DNA of 64,000 nt from Klebsormidium nitens (taxonomy: Eukaryota > Plantae > Klebsormidiophyceae), in NCBI GenBank assembly GCA_000708835.1, contig DF237203.1:57812-121811 (forward strand), read 5' to 3'. The notes beneath the pieces were generated by a model. That model did no database searches, was not told the origin of the DNA, and saw nothing but the letters and a program-made list of their open reading frames with translations. Both the position numbers and the translations under genes were made by a program. Position 1 is the stretch's first letter, and every line of letters begins with the position of its first letter. Positions 15,057 to 60,700 of this stretch are shown piece after piece.

Positions 15057-15262
15057 GGAGTGGGGGCTCCCCGGATACTTATCACCGGGTGCTAGGCTCC
15101 CCACCAGCACGCTGAGAGCGCCACCCGGTCAGGAAACCTACCGGGTGCGATACGCAGGGACTCTCGAGCGCTTGATTGCTGCAAACATCACTACGACAGC
15201 TGCCGGAAGCTACAAGATACTCCTCCCCGCGCCTTGCTGATAAAATTCCCTGCTCCAGATTC

Positions 15263-18200
15263 ATGGCATTGTACCGCAAGTACTGGACCACTCGGCTAGA
15301 GGCGGCCTTATCATGTACCAAGACTATCTAGGGCCTTGATTATGTGGTGGTGAGGGCGGGGACTCTGCATCGCATCACAGACAGTAACAGACACTTTAAG
15401 TTGATGCAGCTCGGTGGCAGCATTGTGCATCGCAATTGTCCATTGGCTTGTCCTCCTACTTCTTATTCCACTCCAAATGGCAGGCGCACAGGCTTTCCCG
15501 CGACAGCCCCAGAGCTGGACTCCTCCAGCAGCGATACTGGATGGCATTGACATCTTCCTGATGCAGCAGGCGTCGCAGTTTGTGCTTTCGGGCCCACGCT
15601 ATGTCACCACCTACAGAGTCCCGGCAGAGCAGGGCAACATGGCCTTCAGGGCAGACACCTACGACACTGCAATTGCGGCGATCTATCTCCTGGAGAGGTG
15701 AGGCGCAGAGTTGTGCTTTTGCCAATTGAGTTTGATAGTGCAACCACCTAGTGCAACGTGGCATCATTTTGAGGATGGGCTATGCTCTGGAACTATGTGC
15801 TTCCAGACCTGTTATTTCTCTAGCCAAGAGCAAATCTATTCTTGTAGGGCACCTTCTATTGGGAACAGGCCATCCATGTCAATCACCACAGTGGTTCTCC
15901 AGCAACATTTTCCAATTAACTCTGATAGCTGGGTGTCAAACCTTGATCCCTCTTCCTCTGCAGGAAGCAGGTGGCGCTTGCAACGAATCTGGTGGACGGT
16001 CTGTATGCCGCCATGATGCATGACCCTGTCGGAGATGGGCGCATTGTGGCAGCAACATGGGCCAATTCACTCCTGGGGTATGTACTCCTTGCTGCATCGC
16101 CCAGAAACGAACGGGATATTGCGAAATCATTGCTTCTGACTAAGGCAATTTCAAATTAGGTTTGGCACCTCCTTTTATGTTTCTCGCATTCAAATAGTCG
16201 CATCAGCTTTCAGCACCTAAAGCAGGTGGCAGACTCTTCTTTTAATGAAGGATGGGCTAAAGGCCAAACCCACCAAGCTTAAGGTAGTCCATCGTGATAA
16301 GACAACCCTTTAGCCAATTTGTTGGCGCAATGGTGCCTGCCTCAGTCGTGGCCTTTCCTTCACTGCTGAGAGGCCCCTACTTGAGGCCACCACCTAAAGC
16401 ATGAGACCTTCTTGAATCGAGTGCAGGCAAGGTGGCGACTTCAGCACGACCATCTTTCCCGGGGCAGGCCTTTCGGACACAGGCAACATGTGCTGGGCTG
16501 CCATTGCCATGGCCAGAGCGTTCCACTACACAGGGCGTGCACACTACCTGCACGGGGCGCGCACGATTGGAGACTGGGTGGTCAAACATACTGCAGTGAG
16601 GCGGCAGACCAATAGATGCACCACACTGTCTTGATTGCTGCAACACTTGGTAGTTAACAGCTCTAATCTTTGAAAATTAAAAAAGGAGCAGTGGTGATCT
16701 TTGTCATGGCTTCACTTAAGTAACCAATGAGATAGTCTGGACTCGTCAGACAGATGTTTTTGTTTCGTTCGTTGTCAGCCAAGTCCTTCTGTTGACACTG
16801 AGTGCAAATACTTTGTCTCCAAACCAGCTGGCTCGATCATTCTGGTCACGGAGGAGCATTCATCGTTTTGCTCTCTTGGTGAACGGATCGGATATCCCTT
16901 GATCGTCTACGAAGCATCAAATCATATGGTCGGTATGGCTTCCTGAAGGAACTTCGACCGGTAGGGGCATGCCCACCATCCTCGCTGCGGCGGGGGGAAA
17001 AGGAAAAGAACAATTGAGTATCCTTCCGTGCAGGTGGCGGACGAGTGGGGCGGCTTCAGTGGGGGCTATGAGGAGGGCGGCGCCAAGCGGCCGTGGCGCT
17101 CCGTTGAGCACAACACGGACGCCTTTGCTCTCTTTCGTCTGCTGCGCCAGGTCACGGGGGAGGCGCGCTGGGAGGAGCACATGCTGGCAGCGCAGGTGAC
17201 TGGGCTACCTCAACGAGACGTCTTCGCTTTTGACAAGCTGGTCGAAACTATTGTACTGACCCCCAAACCAGGCTGGACAGTTAGTCTTCAGATCCCAGAC
17301 TCCTCGCTCTAGAATCCAAGCAACAGCAAGCCTCGTCCAAAGGACACTGATGCGCTCCTAGATTCCTTCGAGGTTCCCACTTGCTTATCGCAGTTACTGA
17401 ACGTTTGCAGCCGTTGAGTCTCGGTGCCATTGAAGTTTATTATCTGAACCAGAGGGGGCTTCGGACAATCGGCGTGTTCACGACCCGCTGACTGTCAATA
17501 GCGATCGCGATGACTGAAGTGAACAAAAGATTAGGACGCCTTCTCCGGGATGCTCCATAGTAGGCGGTTGACCTAGGCTTAAGCCTCGTACTGTCACCCA
17601 ACGATGACAGCGATTATTTTTTTGACCAACTGGAATACCGTCCCTGCTTTCTTCCGCAGGCCCTGGTGCGGCGATGCTTCATCGACGGCCCTGACGGCAC
17701 CGCCCACTTTTGCACCGGGACGGGCGTGGGCCCCGTTTTGAACGAGGACGTCATCCCAACGGACTGCCAGACGTGGACCGCTCTTAGCGGCATCGCGCTA
17801 GACGTCCGCAACGCGTGCCTCAGGTACGTGGTGGCCAATCACCAGACGACAAGTGGCGACTTCGTGGGCATGCGGTTTAGCTCCACGGGTCGGGAGGTGC
17901 AGAACGAGAACACGGCGGGGGCGGCGCTCGCGCTGGGGGAGGCGGGCTGGAGCGAGGGGCGGGCCCTGCTGGCCAGCTTGCAGGACCAGGTGAGGAGGGG
18001 TCGGATGGCTCTCAAGTTATGGCAGCGAAAACGAGTTGGGACGTACGGGAATCCGAGGACGAGGGAAGTTGCTTCGAGTGCTCTCGTGCGGCAATGCCGG
18101 TATCTAAACCCAATTGGACCAATGATGGAAGTTGAAATGGACAAGAGGGATCCAATGCAGGAGTTTCAACAAGCATGGATGTAGGAGTGGGACGAAGCGA

Positions 18201-18635
18201 ATGGAGATTATCGGTGTTGCTTGACAGGGTTCCAGCCGATGACCACTTCCACCTAGGGGCAACAGGAATTACGACTCTAGAGTTCCTAGAAACAGAGTCC
18301 GCTTTCTTTGCAGAACCGAATTGCTTTCAAAACCTCGAGCTCTTGGTACTCCACGTCTTCAAGCCGCTCATTTCATGTCGAGGTTCGAAATCAATCCTCG
18401 ATCCATTGTGCAGATCCGGCGCGCTCCCGGCACCGACGGCCTGGGCGTGGTGGCCACTCCTGCCGCGGAGTGCTGGACGGGCGCCGGCCTGGGCTGGTCC
18501 TACTTCAACTGGCCCCACTCCGCAGCGAGCACGTGGACGGGCCTCGCCCTTCTTGCGGCCGGCACGGGATTGGCCGATAACCCCAACCCTTTCTCCGAGT
18601 TGCGTTCGCAGCCCGGGCGGTTTGGCAGCGAGTGA
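15263..18635 (+). CDS. Secreted bacterial-like (alpha/alpha)-barrel / six-hairpin glycosidase-like protein
   Basis: Phase-consistent exons 15263-15279 (tentative), 15410-15697, 15964-16077, 16427-16595, 17034-17195, 17660-17989, 18414-18635. Hydrophobic signal peptide (..VAALCIAIVHWLVLLLLIPLQMAGAQA). Motifs ADTYDTAIAAIYLL, HDPVGDGRI, DTGNMCWAAIAM, GGFSGG, WRSVEHNTD, HFCTGTG, DCQTW, ENTAGAALAL, PHSAASTWTGLAL..NPF. Confidence 0.75.
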
Positions 18636-19605
18636 ACCAGGGGGTTCGCTCTAATTCCCTCCTTGAGAGTAATCACTGATCGAACCGCCTCCTTGAAGAA
18701 GTGCGTGTTGATGACACAGAGCGTTGATGACATTGAGCAATTATTGACTGCAGTTGTTGGTTCTCTTCGTTTGACATATGGCCCATGCAGTTCCTGAGCG
18801 CTGCAGGAGCAGGCTTCTAACGGATGGACATCATTGGCATCTTTGAAGATCTTGTGTACTTGAAGTTGGAAAGCTTGAAGTAGATGTAAGATTGCTGATT
18901 GTGTCGCGACTCGCACTGCGCCGATCGATATGGATATGTCCTCGCCTGACGCTCCGCTGGCCGCGGCGTACCTGGCTCTATTCGCTTTTTTACATGCGTG
19001 CCGCAACCGATTAATGTCGGTCGATTACAAGAGATAGTATATGCATGCAACAACGTGTCGTGGCACGCCCGTGCTCGGATTGCAATACGCAGGCATGTGC
19101 GAGACCAAGTTTCATATACATGAGCCGCATGTATATCATGCATGAGCTCGGGCCAGCCGCGCACTTCAGAACGATTTGCACCTGCACGACTCGAGAAGTA
19201 TCATACCTGTTCTTATATGCAGAGAAGTGCCGGGCCTAAGCTGAGGCTCCAAGAACCACCGCGTGTGGCACACTGACAAACAATCAGCCAGATGGCATCA
19301 TGCTTGGCCCATGAGCGGCGACATGCGCGCTTTCCCGTCACTCCACGCACTGAGCTATGCATTGGCGTCAGAAGTACTGAGGCCGGCGATATATTGAATA
19401 GGTTCGGTCCACCTTCCGAGATTAGCTAATCCATAGTAGCTGGCCCCGAACAAGGGCTGAAGCAGAACCCTTTTCTGACGGTCGACGGGCTGCCAACATA
19501 GGTCATAAGAATCGGCAAGCAACAAGCACATAAGAAGCTATCAACACGTCTTTACGTTTTAAACACGGCCAGATGCATCGATCCCACGTTATAAAGTGTT
19601 TCAGC

Positions 19606-54705: not shown

Positions 54706-57700
54706 TCAACGACGAAGTTCTCCTGCCTCGTGCCCTCTTATCCCCACCTCCCCTTCATCCGCCCCGCTCTCGAGCTCTCCTTCGGAGGCCTCATCCGCAG
54801 GCCGGACCTTAGCAAGGCCCCGAAGAGTGGCCACGGCACTCCGGATGACATCTTTCCGGGGGGTGGGCCGTCGCATCTGCGAACGGCTCGTTGCCCTCCC
54901 CCCTGCCCATGCGGAAGCCGTTCCTCTCCTCCGCCTACCCCTAGCGTCCAGCGACTCACTGAAACTGTCATCATCTTCCTGGTCCCTATACTTGCGGCTC
55001 GCTGTCCTGCCCGGTGGGTCTTCACCGGGTCTGTCTTGTTGCCGAATAAGGCCCGGCTCCGAGTCGGCTGACAGCTCGGGGGGTGCCAACCGGCCTCGTT
55101 GACCGGGCTCCTGGTCCTGGCGCAGGTCCCCGGGCTCAGCTTCGCCTGCAATCAAATTGTGATGAATCAAAAGCCCTTAAGGAGTGCTTTACAGATTTGA
55201 CACTCATGACCTTGCTGCCGCTGCACTTCGTGCTAGCCTCCAAGTTGCTTGCTTCGTTGCCAGAGTAGTTACTTCTTCAAAAAGGTACGGCAAGAAGCGA
55301 AGCAAGAGACCTTTCACAACGGCTTGCAGGGTTAGGACGGCTCAGATGCACACTGTTCTTTGCTCCACGGCACTCCCTGACCGACCCCCGGAAGCCGTAC
55401 CTTCTGACAGACTGCTGGTTGCGGCGACGTCCTGCCTCGTTTGTTGCGGCTCCGCTTCGTGCCTCAGACCGGAAGGCGGTCCGCCAAACGACGCGGATGG
55501 CTCAGAAGCCAGGCCTGAGTCGATTGGCAAACTGGTCAGCAATAAGTACTGTTCGGTGGAGCGCAGGGCTAGACGTTGGGAAATGGTAGGGCAAGAGCGA
55601 CGAGCGAGCATGGCGAGCAGAGGGACGTCAGGATCGAATAGGAACGCGTAGTCAGTACACCTTCAAGATGCTCGACCTGGCGTGGTCGAGGGCGCAAAGA
55701 GGTGACTTTCGGAGTTGTTTTCGAGAAGACGCTTTTGTCTGGCCTTCCCTTAACGAAATTCTCCCAACCACACCCGTCCTTTAAACGTACGGTTGATGGA
55801 CAACCCAAAAGGTGACTCAAAAGAAAGCTGTCATGCGTATTGGGCTCGAGCCCCAATTAAGTCGAGGGCACTGACAACTTAAAGCATCATGAAATGAAAA
55901 GTAGGCCGTCGATTATGCACGTCACTTGCACGTTATGCAACATGCTGCTGGACATCAACGTGCTAGCCTGATAAGCCATGGGCCGGCAAATTTCATAGCA
56001 AGTTGCACACTCACCTGCCACCACTTCGCCAAACGACACCGACGTCGACTCCGTCAGCGCGGCGCTCGTACGGCCCCCCCCGGAGGGGGATCCCCCGCTG
56101 CGGATGCTGCTCTCTTCCTCCCCCCCCGCCAGCAACGTGTGCGCCATGGTCTCCACCGCCTGCCGCGCGTCCCACCGCTCGTCCAGAAACGCCCACCGCC
56201 GCCGAGCGCGCGCCCCCAGGCTCTTCTCCGCCCCCGCCGCCGACGTGGCGCTGACGTCACGTTGCTCCTCGGGTCGCCCGTCGGTCGGTTCCACTGCTGG
56301 CAAAGCAGGAGTGGGCGGCGCGGCTTGGGGGGAGTCTTCTTCCTTGAGGGGGGTTTGTGCTGTGCCGTTTTGCTCTGCCGGCGCCCCCCCTTCCGGCTCG
56401 GCTTCCTCCTGCTCTGCACGCTGTTGGCCGTCCTCTACCCGAGTACTATCTTGTCGCTCTGCCTCGTCCTCTGCAGTTACCTCTCGCCCACCTTCACTCT
56501 TCGCTTCTTCGTTCGCGTCATTGTTTTCCAGCCCGTCCTGCTTTCCTAAGCCCCTCGCTGAAGACTCCCTTTGAGCCTCAATTTGGTCAGGGCCCCCCGC
56601 CCCAGTTTCCGACTCTAGTTCCCCGGCCAGCCGCACGCTGATGCCCATTCCCTCAAGCGCCGCCTCGAACCCCCTCCTCACCGCTTTCCTGCGGACCAGC
56701 GTCACTTCTGGCGACGACGAGGGCGTGCTGGGAGTGGGCGGGGTCGCCGGCGTACTCCCCGCTTTAATTCTGCGGGTTACTCTCACGGGTTTCGGCTGCG
56801 GCGCCGTCTGCGGCTCGGTCTGGGCTGCCGCCGCCCGGTTTTCTCTTAATCCAGGTTCTGTGACGGGGTTTGGGAAAGGGTTTGGGAAAGGGGCGCCGGG
56901 AACGAAGCGTCCATCGGGCTGAAAGTAGAAGGGGAACGGAATGAACGGCCAAGGCTGGGACGGACCAGTAACGGACGGCAGACCACTAGCTGGGTAAGAA
57001 GTGGGTAGAAATGGGAAAGGCAGGGGGCCCTGGGTTACCGGAATAGAGCCGAGCGTTTCTGGCTCGGGGGCGCGGATTGCTGCTTGTGCAAGCCCCGCAG
57101 GGGGGGCCGGAACTTCCGGTTGCGCTGCCGAGACGCTGACTTCCGGCGGCGCTTGAGAGACTGAGGGCCTGGAATCAGAAACCGCTGCTTCTTCTTCGTC
57201 TTCCAGTGGAGGCGACAGACCGCTTTCTATGCCTCTCGCTGTGCCGACAACGCCGACTCCGACCCTCTCTGCGCCAGCCTCCTCTCCCCGCACTTCAGCC
57301 CGGTGCTGTGCAGACGTGTCCGCTGATGTCATCCTCGGGCCCAATGCGTCCTCTGGCGCATCCCCAGAATTCCACGCTTCTTCCTCCCTCGTACTGTCCC
57401 GCTGCGCGTTCTGCTGCTGATTTCCCACCGCCCACATCCTATCCACCTCTTCGCTGATGACCTCAGCAGCCACCGCGCGCACCAGCTCCTCGTCAATGCT
57501 GACGTCATCTGACAGCCGCTCCCTTAGTGCGTCGTTACCGCCCGCCTCAGCCCCACTGCTCATCTCAGAGAAGACGCCAGAGTCAGCTGCTTTCAGCCCC
57601 TCCAATATCTCCGGCCTTTGCAACAGTTGAGAAATGACCTGCTCGCTCAGCCACTCCGTAACACCCCTCGCCGTCTCCTCCAGCCCCTTCCCGCCACTTG

Positions 57701-60700
57701 GCGCGCTTTCGACCGCGCCACGTGGCTCCGACCCACCGAAGTCTCTCTCCGTGCCCTCCTCCGATCGTTCTGCCGGATCGTCGTCGTTCCGTTCTGAAAG
57801 TCGTTCCGCGATCAGCCCCGCTGCGGCCTCTCTCGCAAGCGCCACAAGTCTTCCTACCGCCCCCTCATTGTCACCAGAACCGGGCATTCCCGCCCCCACC
57901 GGCCGCGTCTCCCCCTGTCTCCGCTGCCTCGGTTCCGGGGACGGATACCTAACGGCAGTCGCCGGACGGTGCACCATTTCACCGGGGCGCAGAGTGCTTC
58001 TCCTCGGGACACCAGGGCGGGGGGCCCGTTCCAGGGCCAAATCCTCCCCCCCCTCCCCACCAGGAGACTCGGGGGGCCGCCGCGGCTCGGACATGCGCTT
58101 GACCCAACCCGCGTCACCGCTCTCTTTCCGCTTTCTCGCGGGCGGCTGCGCGGCAGGCGGCCGCTTCACCTTGTGGCCGAACGCGATCTCGACCTTCTTC
58201 AGGGTCACCGGCTTTTCCTCTCGTCTCTGCGCCCCCCTCGAGCCCGCCTTTCTCGGCAAACCCTCCGGAACCTTCACGTCTCCCTCCACAGAGATCCCCC
58301 TGTTCTCCTTCCCGTCGGCCCGCCGCCTCCCAACCCCACTCTTCGTCTCCGCGTTTCCCGCCAGGTTCTCCGCTCTGTCTCGAGCCGCTCCTAAGGGGTC
58401 CCCGATCCGCCTCCGCTTTGCGCCAACGGGCATCCCCGTGGATAAGGCCGCCGCTGCGGCAATCCGACGGTCCACATCCTGGCGCAACCTTTCTAAAAAC
58501 AGGGCCTCTTCGGCTTGCTGGGCACTCAGGTGGTCAGTCTGTGGGGCCTCCCAACTGTCGGAAACGTTGTGGGCAGCAGACGCAAAGGCCAACTCTTGAA
58601 AGGCGGGGTCCTTGGCCCGCTCTTTGGCGCGCCCTGGCACGCCCTTTGCAGCCCGGGTAATCAGCTCGAGTTCCTGCACAAGAGGCCGGGGGCTTGGTCG
58701 TCAGTGAAGGTCGACACTCCAAGCACCCTTTGGTGTCAATCAAAGTACCAACGAGGGGGTGAGGCTTTCAAAAAGATTTATGTGCCTGCTAGTACGTACA
58801 GGGTTTGAGAAGGCTACTGAGGGTCTATGTGCTCACAACAGCATGGAAACATGATGCTCCAGATCCCCTTCTCAAGAGACGCTGCTCCGCCGACAGCCAG
58901 GTTGTTCTTTCGTCTTCTGTACGCAGGAACAAGCTGTTCCGGGACGGGTCCTCAGAGGTGCGGAAGTGAGAGCACAAGGAAGACCGTTCGGTTGAGGCGG
59001 GGGCAGAGCGCACCGATTCTGCATGGAACAGACACCTGATCTGGGACCCTCAAGGCAGCTTCCGATGACGCAAGTGAGAGCAGAAGGAAGGTCGTACGGT
59101 CGAAAAGGGGTCAGCGCGCACGAACCTTGTGTGCGGCGTCGTAGTCGAAAGCGCTGCCGAGCAACGCCTGCACAGCGGCCTTGGCGGAGTTGGCCCGCTC
59201 TTCCTCCCTCGCCGCAAGATCCCGCCACCTGCGCATCCAGAAAAATACTCCCAACTCGTTAACAAGGAGCCGGTGTGCCTCCGTTGGAGTTGTTGACTGA
59301 CGTTGCAGCGCCTTCAACGGAGGACGCCCCTTTGAAGGCAAGGTGCGGTCAGGGCGTTTCTGAGCAGAGCGTGTCGGGCTAGAACGGATCACACGGAGTA
59401 TACTGGCTGAGCGGAGATTGACCTGCTTTCGACGGTTTTGCCAGATCACCGTTCAACTTTCTCCCATAATCGTCTCGGCCTGAGAGTAACGGCGGCGAAG
59501 AAGTTGCAATGTGATCCTTGAAACAAACAGGGACGTGCTCAACCGCACGGTTGTCTCGAAGCATTTGCATTTGGCAAAGCGGTGCAAGTGCTTTACAAGA
59601 CAAGATGCCGAAGTTTCTTCACTCCAAGGTGTTCCATCACATATCCAACGGTAAGGATGCTCCGTTTCTAGCCGAAACAGCTCACTTGGCGTGCGCCGCA
59701 TGGACCAGCAGCTGCCACTCCATGCCGTGCCCCTCGACCGCCTTCACCGCTTCTTCCACCGCAGACTCGAGCCCCGGCCACTGGCTGGGGGCCACATGTT
59801 CCTCGGGCTTGAATTCGCGCAACCCAGTTGCCAGCTCAGCTGCTGCTGACGCAACGTCTTGCGGGCCCCGCTTAGAGGACTGAGATGCAGTGGAAGAGCG
59901 GCTGCGGGGGAGAGAGGACGCCTTGGAGGGGAGGGGCGTGCGCAGCCGGAATGCGGGCGACTGGAGGGCGACCTGGTGAGACCCGCGGACCTGCCAGGGG
60001 GGAGAAAGAAGGGGTGTGAAATGAGACGCTGCTCCAGGGAAAGCATACATGCAACATAGAGCGACTCTAGGGGGAGCTTGAGGGAGTCGAGAGATGGAAA
60101 GGCGACAACTTTCAGAAGATAAGAAGCGGCTTATACTGACGACGTGAAAAGAAGCAGGGCTCAGCTCGATAAATGTAGAATCTCAGCTCGAGTTCAACAT
60201 CTACAGGCGACCGGGCGCCCCTTCACGGACCACGTCTGAGCTTACGCGAAGTGTCCCCGGGCCCGCACCACCCCTCACCTGTTGCCTCAGGCTGTCCAGC
60301 TCTGCCGTCTGGCGCGCCATTGCGTGCGCGGCAGCCGCTCTCCGCTCGCCCCCCACGTGGCCTTGCCCAACGTGGGCCGCTTGCGCGAGCTGCGCCGCAC
60401 CCTGCAGGCTGGCTGCATGGAAGCTGGCGCACGCGGCGTAGAATTCGCCCAATTTGCGGTCGAGCATCTCCTTAAGGTCAGTGACAGCTGTCGCCAGCTG
60501 GCGTGAGAGTGCGGGGGCCGGGGTTGCGGTGCTTATTGGAGCGGGGGCCTCTTGGGAGGCGGGGAGAGGAACCGATTGCAGCTTTGAGACGGCGTCGACC
60601 ACCTGGCATAGACACAAGCAGCGGTCCGTTTGTCTAGTGGCGTTTCAGGGCACTTGAAGAGGTCGCATCCATGGTTGTATCGCCCCAATGAGAGTGTCCG

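Follow-up and report, generated by a model that had tools for sequence, protein, structure and literature searches.

KFL_002540180 of Klebsormidium nitens, an expressed and spliced gene for a six-hairpin barrel of probable bacterial origin

The usual catalytic-pocket site of carbohydrate enzymes built on the six-hairpin, or (alpha/alpha)6, barrel is at the N-terminal ends of the inner helices. In the BcsZ-type arrangement the gene for an (alpha/alpha)6 glycosidase stands beside that of a GT2 beta-glucan synthase. That streptophyte algae took up carbohydrate-active enzymes from bacteria by gene transfer is a known theme, and such transfers figure in discussions of the toolkit needed for a life on land. 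The rhizobial bgsBA genes form a bicistronic mixed-linkage glucan operon, without such a barrel gene (PMC5567048, PMC13438883). The gene described here, KFL_002540180, lies in a 64,000-nt stretch of Klebsormidium nitens DNA (GenBank assembly GCA_000708835.1, contig DF237203.1, positions 57,812 to 121,811 of the forward strand), which is called the window below and supplies the coordinates.

KFL_002540180 (window 15200-18800, + strand) is already public, its product being listed as a "hypothetical protein" of 405 aa (GAQ85784.1, here database protein P0015), and its family is undescribed in Pfam, NCBIfam and PDB. No publications on KFL_002540180 or GAQ85784 were found by a literature search on the gene identifiers. 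As a whole, the data are best explained, at a probability of roughly 0.65, by an expressed six-exon gene whose product would be a bacterial-derived six-hairpin barrel, glycan-binding and glycan-transforming, and intracellular.

Gene structure, transcription and translation start

Exon borders were first read from the sequence, and Logan contigs of four RNA runs (four studies) were then aligned to the region. The features of the locus are given below, with the evidence in brackets.

15200-15476, + strand: transcribed 5' leader (part of exon 1) with upstream ATGs at 15263, 15313, 15342 and 15404 (RNA contigs begin at 15200-15223 or slightly before and continue without a break to 15697)
15404-15550, + strand: 48-codon upstream open reading frame overlapping the main start; its ATG matches the in-frame signal-peptide start of the sister lineage L028 (sequence comparison with L028)
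15477-15697, + strand: exon 1, coding part, annotated start MAGAQAFPRQ, motif TYDTAIAAI (RNA contigs and coding sequence)
15698-15963, + strand: intron 1, GT..AG, 266 nt (joint in 4/4 runs)
15964-16077, + strand: exon 2, motif HDPVGDGRI (RNA contigs and coding sequence)
16078-16426, + strand: intron 2, GT..AG, 349 nt (joint in 4/4 runs)
16427-16595, + strand: exon 3, motif DTGNMCWAAIAM (RNA contigs and coding sequence)
16596-17033, + strand: intron 3, GT..AG, 438 nt (joint in 4/4 runs)
17034-17195, + strand: exon 4, motifs GGFSGG and WRSVEHNTD (RNA contigs and coding sequence)
17196-17659, + strand: intron 4, GT..AG, 464 nt (joint in 4/4 runs)
17660-17989, + strand: exon 5, motifs CTGT, PTDCQTW and QNENTA (RNA contigs and coding sequence)
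17990-18413, + strand: intron 5, GT..AG, 424 nt (joint in 2/4 runs, from two studies)
18414-18635, + strand: exon 6, coding part and stop codon, motif PHSAASTW..NPNPF (RNA contigs and coding sequence)
18636-18800, + strand: 3' untranslated region, at least to 18800 (RNA contigs continue to 18800)

KFL_002540180 is thus a real gene, nuclear, single-copy and expressed, with six exons and five GT-AG introns. RNA depth was 10-50 in exons versus 0-5 in introns, and the guanine-plus-cytosine (GC) content was 66% in coding sequence versus 47-51% in introns. When the six coding exons were joined, from ATG 15477 through the stop codon at 18633-18635, the result was a coding sequence of 1218 nt, the translation of which was letter for letter that of P0015. 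The joined exons served for this identity check and for the substitution-rate estimates given below; homology searches were run with the database record P0015. An initial annotation, made from the window's letters, had proposed a spliced, seven-exon gene starting at 15263, with a signal peptide and a series of ordered motifs. Splicing was confirmed at the five joints by RNA contigs from four studies, and all of the quoted motifs are present in the order stated. The exon count was corrected to six, as the RNA contigs are unbroken from about 15200 to 15697 and have no intron between 15263 and 15410 in the main transcript.

The start at 15263 did not hold either, since the ATG there opens a 22-codon upstream open reading frame that is closed by a stop. 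What had been taken for a signal peptide is a hydrophobic stretch (…ALCIAIVHWLVLLLLIPLQMAGAQA/FPRQ) in frame with the protein; it is encoded by codons 15411-15476, and ATG 15477 falls inside it. A TGA at 15402-15404 closes the main frame upstream of this stretch, no in-frame ATG precedes 15477, and ATG 15404 is in another frame than the protein, its 48-codon frame running across the main start. In all four RNA assemblies the region from about 15200 to 15697 was continuous, with zero base differences from the genome and no upstream splice. Mini-exon models that would supply an ATG (donor 15280 or donor 15350, acceptor 15409) were rejected on the same RNA assemblies, which are unspliced there; the model with donor 15350 is also not conserved in L028. 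In the reference strain, then, the protein most likely starts at ATG 15477, without a signal peptide, and because of this the product is probably intracellular rather than secreted. The description of the protein as secreted found no support in this strain, where the protein as transcribed is without an export signal.

The most serious competitor, although clearly the less probable reading, is a secreted protein acting outside the cell on wall, mucilage or biofilm glucans. Translation would then be initiated upstream of ATG 15477, with a near-cognate codon (GTG 15414, for example) or a rare splice form providing the start, and the hydrophobic stretch ending in AQA before FPRQ would act as signal peptide. 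In keeping with this, the 22 codons that precede ATG 15477 form an open, hydrophobic stretch in the frame of the protein in each of the three Klebsormidium lineages compared, and in L028 (synonymous distance, dS, 0.33) the upstream ATG is in frame and yields a textbook signal peptide with n-region, h-region and an A-Q-A cleavage pattern. Distant bacterial members of the family are exported as well: Streptomyces members carry twin-arginine translocation (Tat) motifs, and Planctomycete members carry Sec signals together with weak, sub-threshold matches to PEP-CTERM or dockerin tails. Against secretion, besides the four unspliced RNA assemblies, is the lineage L029 (dS 0.83), in which the equivalent upstream ATG is absent and which, like the window, is without an in-frame ATG. 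The distance from the upstream ATG to the conserved ATG is 73 nt in the window versus 75 nt in L028, leaving the window 2 nt short. The leader is otherwise CT-rich and diverges at about the neutral rate outside a 26-nt block, and the starts of other single-domain members (Physarum P0011/P0036, P0013, P0007), close to the same 'FPR' boundary, show no signal peptide. Non-AUG initiation, or secretion in the ancestor or in particular strains, is possible at well below even odds, and a wall, mucilage or biofilm role for the product is speculation.

The 26-nt block from the upstream ATG (15404-15429) is identical between the window and L028 (window 15404-15476 compared with L028 3061-3135). Window and L028 differ at a third of silent sites, and the leader sequence after the block diverges. 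The block with its ATG may be a conserved regulatory upstream open reading frame or a recently disabled leader. A signal peptide that one lineage encodes and that lies out of frame in the sister lineage bears on how such genes are annotated.

Fold, conserved pocket and bacterial relatives

Nothing above threshold was obtained for KFL_002540180 in Pfam or NCBIfam, exon by exon or with the whole protein, and exon 5 searched against PDB sequences gave noise only. An AlphaFold2 model built from a 30-sequence alignment (pLDDT 91.2, pTM 0.91) has 12 helices arranged as an (alpha/alpha)6 six-hairpin barrel. Foldseek against PDB returned 345 matches at E<=0.001, all of them six-hairpin enzymes (best E 5e-10), with cellobiose and glucose 2-epimerases at the top. 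The Z scores from VIA-align were:

Dextran dextrinase / GH15: 33-35
MmpH: 33.6
Cellobiose 2-epimerases: 30-32
GH76, GH88, GH100, GH94: 28-29

Model, Foldseek matches and Z scores of 28-35 agree on the six-hairpin-glycosidase-like membership claimed in the initial annotation. Assignment to GH76 alpha-1,6-mannanases was rejected: PF03663 reached 12.6 bits versus a cut-off of 25.9, and the PDB profile hits (E 1e-3 to 1e-2) cover only the repeated hairpin-helix motif. The name 'methylaspartate ammonia-lyase', given in the initial annotation as a probably erroneous label of proteobacterial members, does exist, as the automatic name of the nearest Atlas clusters by language-model features. It is wrong, as the fold is an all-helical (alpha/alpha)6 barrel rather than the TIM-barrel of that enolase-superfamily enzyme, and no Pfam hit to the latter was obtained.

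The nearest relatives were bacterial proteins of about 700 aa, the C-terminal barrel of which is 45-50% identical over 93-98% of the algal protein (E 1e-105). Their sources were Longimicrobium and other Gemmatimonadota, Pyrinomonadaceae, Archangium, Cystobacter, Roseivirga, Owenweeksia, Marinobacterium, Chloroflexia and others, and all are labelled 'hypothetical protein' (for example WP_257453672.1 of Archangium lipolyticum). The algal protein begins exactly at the boundary between their two halves (the 'AFP' boundary). The N-terminal half, of about 310 aa, had no Pfam hit. With a sequence profile against PDB its top hits were Cry7Ca1 (E 0.0097) and PirB (E 0.028); its AlphaFold2 model (pLDDT 73) was matched by Foldseek to the fern insecticidal protein IPD113 (E 7e-3) and then to a run of Cry toxins. 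By VIA the best 25 matches were all Cry, IPD113 or PirB (Z 10.8-14.3), and the nearest Atlas clusters carry PF03945 Endotoxin_N (score 0.94). The two-domain genes stand alone, with no conserved neighbours, and their products are without a signal peptide. The joining of a Cry domain-I-like half to a six-hairpin barrel looks like an undescribed architecture among Cry-like proteins. Across the two-domain set (L002-L014, L018, L032-L034, for example L034:8001-10124; P0019, P0025, P0099) the N-terminal half is most like IPD113, Cry1/3/8/11 and PirB. Such proteins are frequent in Longimicrobium, and occur also in myxobacteria and Bacteroidota.

More distant members were those named in the initial annotation. 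A locus scan gave family matches in 26 bacterial species, with Streptomyces and Sanguibacter proteins 30-32% identical to the algal one, and the bacterial motif forms given in the annotation (YDNA, HD..DGRL, TGNMAW, GGF.GG, KSTEHNTD, D.Q.W, EGTA, H.GATAW..NPF) align in proteins of Streptomyces, Kitasatospora, Rhizobium, Nitrobacter and Azospirillum. The family named there is kin, by significant similarity and the same motif order, but not the nearest kin, which are the two-domain Cry-like proteins. Its actinobacterial 'Tat pathway signal' group is real: besides the Tat motifs in Streptomyces, an ESM Atlas cluster named 'Tat pathway signal sequence domain protein' is structurally near-identical to the algal model (template-modelling (TM) score 0.88), and Actinomycetota Atlas clusters score 0.86-0.89.

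Plasmid-borne copies were seen in Rhizobium, Azospirillum, Nitrobacter, Kitasatospora and Streptomyces. On a plasmid of Rhizobium sp. CCGE532 (L036:5255-10044) an HlyD_3 adaptor gene, the barrel gene and a GT2/Cellulose_synt gene run in one direction, with a gap of 31 nt; on plasmid 1 of Nitrobacter hamburgensis (L037:7670-12092) the same three run in one direction, with genes overlapping by 58 nt. The order of the barrel and GT2 genes differs between the two. The stated position of proteobacterial members beside glucan-synthase genes was accordingly borne out for these two species but not for Azospirillum sp. B510, around whose copy the GT2/HlyD context was not found.

The barrel was met in other company as well. 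In Kitasatospora purpeofusca, a linear plasmid (L038:6282-9134) encodes a 950-aa hypothetical protein with the barrel C-terminal behind some 520 residues of unassigned kind. In the Atlas the same fold (TM 0.77-0.78) is joined to PilZ in proteins of Omnitrophota; in 315 proteobacterial proteins it is attached to a prophage tail-fibre N-terminal domain. No sequence-level relative of the barrel was found by tblastn in the phage collection.

Down to 26-30% identity, invariant residues are D63, D94, G131, W135, G175, G179, R190, E193, H194, N195, D197, G242, P255, D257, Q259, W261, E305, T307, H367 and W373, and the alga retains every one. Their motifs start at 60-63, 131-135, 190-197, 255-261, 303-308 and 367-373, compared with helix starts at 61, 130, 192, 256, 304 and 368; by DSSP on the AlphaFold2 model and the alignments, the conserved residues are at the N-terminal ends of helices 2, 4, 6, 8, 10 and 12. 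Because invariant residues (D63, D94, G131/W135, R190-x-x-E193-H-N-x-D197, D257-x-Q-x-W261, E305-x-T-A, H367/W373) start every second helix, the protein would be expected to bind a glycan in the canonical pocket and, most likely, to cleave or otherwise transform it. Cleavage would use two invariant carboxylates, for which E193, D257 and E305 are candidates, aided by D63 and H367. Since GT2 cellulose-synthase-like glucan synthases are encoded in one operon with distant proteobacterial members, a beta-glucan-type substrate is the leading guess. Catalytic activity is a prediction for every member of the family.

A carbohydrate epimerase, isomerase or other non-hydrolytic enzyme of the AGE / cellobiose-2-epimerase type, working on soluble sugars inside the cell, is unlikely. 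Epimerases do head the Foldseek list, with Z of 29-32; the conserved His at the start of helix 12 and H194 can be likened to the His-based chemistry of the AGE superfamily; and the eukaryotic copies are without a signal peptide. Yet no Pfam hit to an epimerase family was obtained despite that top fold match, the hydrolases GH15, MmpH and GH76 are equal or higher by Z, and four invariant acidic residues suit hydrolase chemistry better. Bacterial members are moreover exported, surface-anchored or paired with polysaccharide synthases, which suits polymer-acting enzymes.

Improbable, too, is a non-catalytic glycan-binding module, which in the closest bacterial relatives would take the place of the receptor-binding domains of Cry-type toxins; the eukaryotic copies, standing alone, would bind the same glycan, sense it or mask it. 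The nearest relatives do all have a Cry domain-I-like N-terminal half, no signal peptide and stand-alone genes. The acidic and His residues, however, are invariant across toxin-like, synthase-linked and Tat-exported members at 26-35% identity, a pattern seen more typically in catalytic centres than in lectin sites.

Eukaryotic distribution and origin of the gene

Eukaryotic relatives were sought by three database-wide word-based searches and, exhaustively, by a HMMER scan that used exon 5 alone. The only ones found were in Klebsormidium lineages, in Chara vulgaris (a transcript with 52% identity to the algal protein) and in Physarum polycephalum with its environmental relatives, along with one on a contig of unknown origin (P0013). 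The gene is thus not unique to K. nitens among eukaryotes. No land-plant or chlorophyte member was found by these searches; the earlier remark that no land-plant member was known agrees with the three database-wide searches, and in place of broad eukaryotic homologs there are few and patchy copies, in a family whose other members are nearly all bacterial. The Physarum copy (group of P0011, P0036, P0108, P0111 and P0112) is single-domain, 43% identical, and without a signal peptide. Relatives 65-93% identical to it in soil and environmental assemblies make up a second eukaryotic lineage of the family. P0013 is a single-domain, intronless copy on contig L001 (1303-1758 and 2385-3704 noted), a contig otherwise poor in open reading frames and holding a fragment that resembles a group II intron reverse transcriptase.

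The K. nitens locus is collinear over 13 kb with L028, and the six-exon layout is common to L028 and L029/L030. The ratio of nonsynonymous to synonymous substitution rates (dN/dS) was 0.124 at dS 0.33 (L028) and 0.154 at dS 0.83 (L029); KFL_002540180 is under purifying selection. By introns, synteny, expression and selection alike, the gene is integrated in the host genome.

Two maximum-likelihood trees were computed under LG+C20. In both, Proteobacteria, Actinobacteria and the Planctomycete group fall outside a clade with support of 100/99 which contains Klebsormidium with Chara (96/93), Physarum with P0108 (100/100), P0013 and the two-domain bacterial crown (94-98). The eukaryotic lineages are placed at the side of that crown or beneath it, as a basal grade or clade, and not within it; in neither tree are they nested in any specific bacterial clade that could be named as donor. 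A single eukaryotic clade of Klebsormidium, Chara and Physarum appears in the best tree at 74/33; it is not well supported, nor is it rejected (approximately unbiased test with P0013 added, p-AU 0.058).

The deeper branches are bacterial throughout (Proteobacteria, Actinobacteria, Planctomycetes), which makes the family's polarity bacterial and transfer from bacteria to eukaryotes the most economical reading. A bacterial gene would have passed by horizontal transfer into a streptophyte alga, gained introns, and been kept under purifying selection; the Klebsormidium copy would share a common ancestor with that of Chara vulgaris. Since the two have shared derived residues and Chara is in sister position, the sequences suggest either one acquisition before the Klebsormidiophyceae-Charophyceae split with later loss towards land plants, or a later alga-to-alga transfer. 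The initial proposal of a horizontally acquired, now spliced gene stands as regards bacterial polarity, introns and patchy eukaryotes, and falls short of an identifiable donor clade.

There is little probability that no bacteria-to-alga transfer took place, that is, that an old eukaryotic gene was lost in most lineages or that the two-domain crown took its barrel from a eukaryote. Such histories fit the branching of eukaryotes below the crown rather than inside it, and the single eukaryotic clade of the best tree. They are opposed by the deeper family branches, which are all bacterial and far more diverse, and by the eukaryotic hits, which are three unrelated patchy lineages among billions of proteins searched; vertical descent needs very many losses. 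An artefact, whether bacterial contamination of the assembly or a miscalled gene, is refuted: the family is bacterial and coding GC exceeds that of the introns, but five GT-AG introns are spliced in the RNA of four studies, the locus is collinear with one Klebsormidium lineage and has the exon layout of another, and the gene is under purifying selection.

Elsewhere in the window, at 55890-58679 on the - strand, a 930-codon open frame lies in the most GC-rich part (GC 0.65). It is of low complexity, with charged residues and proline abundant and no Pfam hit, and is probably one large exon of a disordered protein.

Assessment and comparison with known systems

Several points weigh against an intracellular, glycan-transforming enzyme of bacterial descent. 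The Chara and Physarum sequences come from transcriptomes, in which associated organisms are possible in principle. The trees give no donor phylum, and they do not fully fix which way a transfer between the eukaryotic copies and the two-domain crown would have run. With an in-frame ATG giving a textbook signal peptide in L028, secretion may be ancestral, or may be reached here by non-AUG initiation. The members that tie the barrel to glucan synthases are only 26-30% identical, and the Azospirillum copy is without this link. The fold singles out no enzyme class, as hydrolases, phosphorylases and epimerases score alike, and the closest relatives are domains of Cry-like two-domain proteins, where the barrel might serve for binding and not for catalysis.

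KFL_002540180 offers a clean case of the probable transfer of a candidate carbohydrate-active enzyme, being expressed, with introns gained, and under selection. Its sharing with Chara would push the event deep into streptophyte history, and the gene would then have been lost on the way to land plants or within them. Neither Pfam nor NCBIfam has a model of the family, and no structure of a member has been solved; with its sharply conserved predicted pocket and the tie of its genes to those of GT2 glucan synthases, the family could realistically prove to be a new one of glycoside hydrolases. The interest of the gene is raised by the unforeseen relation to Cry-like two-domain proteins and lowered by the loss of the argument from secretion. 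For toxin biology, it may be of note that soil bacteria have hundreds of proteins in which a Cry domain-I-like half is joined to this barrel.

A broader reading is tentative. In it, the barrel would be an undescribed carbohydrate-active family, probably of glycoside hydrolases, with three bacterial lifestyles: as partner of GT2 beta-glucan synthases, as an exported or surface enzyme, and as the 'warhead or receptor' part, at the C-terminus, of a new class of Cry-like two-domain proteins in soil and predatory bacteria. Klebsormidium, Chara and Physarum, as terrestrial and freshwater eukaryotes sharing the habitat of such bacteria, would have captured the barrel of the toxin lineage but not its pore-forming half. 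Selection would have kept the barrel there, either for the host's own glycan metabolism or as a counter-measure.

Among known systems, the characterised six-hairpin enzymes (GH15, including glucoamylase, dextran dextrinase and isomaltose glucohydrolase; MmpH; GH76; cellobiose 2-epimerases) have the (alpha/alpha)6 barrel in common with the algal model, at Z of 28-35 and a root-mean-square deviation of about 3 A over 310-340 residues, and like them the model has conserved polar residues at the inner-helix starts. Sequence identity to these enzymes is only 8-14%, however, no family model reaches threshold, and the sequence matches are to the generic hairpin-helix motif rather than to catalytic residues. 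The distant bacterial members resemble the BcsZ-type and bgsBA arrangements, whereas the algal gene is without such neighbours. With bgsBA (PMC5567048, PMC13438883) the Rhizobium and Nitrobacter units share the two partners, a GT2 cellulose-synthase-like protein and an HlyD-type adaptor, a likeness by family that does not imply orthology of the GT2 protein to BgsA. The Tat-signal Actinobacteria and the proteobacterial group have the same ordered motifs and fold as the algal protein, at 26-32% identity (tblastn E 1e-9 to 4e-24, TM 0.86-0.89); they are exported by Tat or Sec signals, whereas the algal protein as transcribed in this strain is without such a signal, and in the tree they are outgroups rather than the nearest kin of the algal gene. 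Closest of all are the two-domain bacterial proteins, whose barrel shares the same motifs and the 'AFP' boundary with the algal protein; they have an extra N-terminal half of about 310 aa, like domain I of Cry delta-endotoxins, and no introns, whereas the algal protein is the barrel alone.

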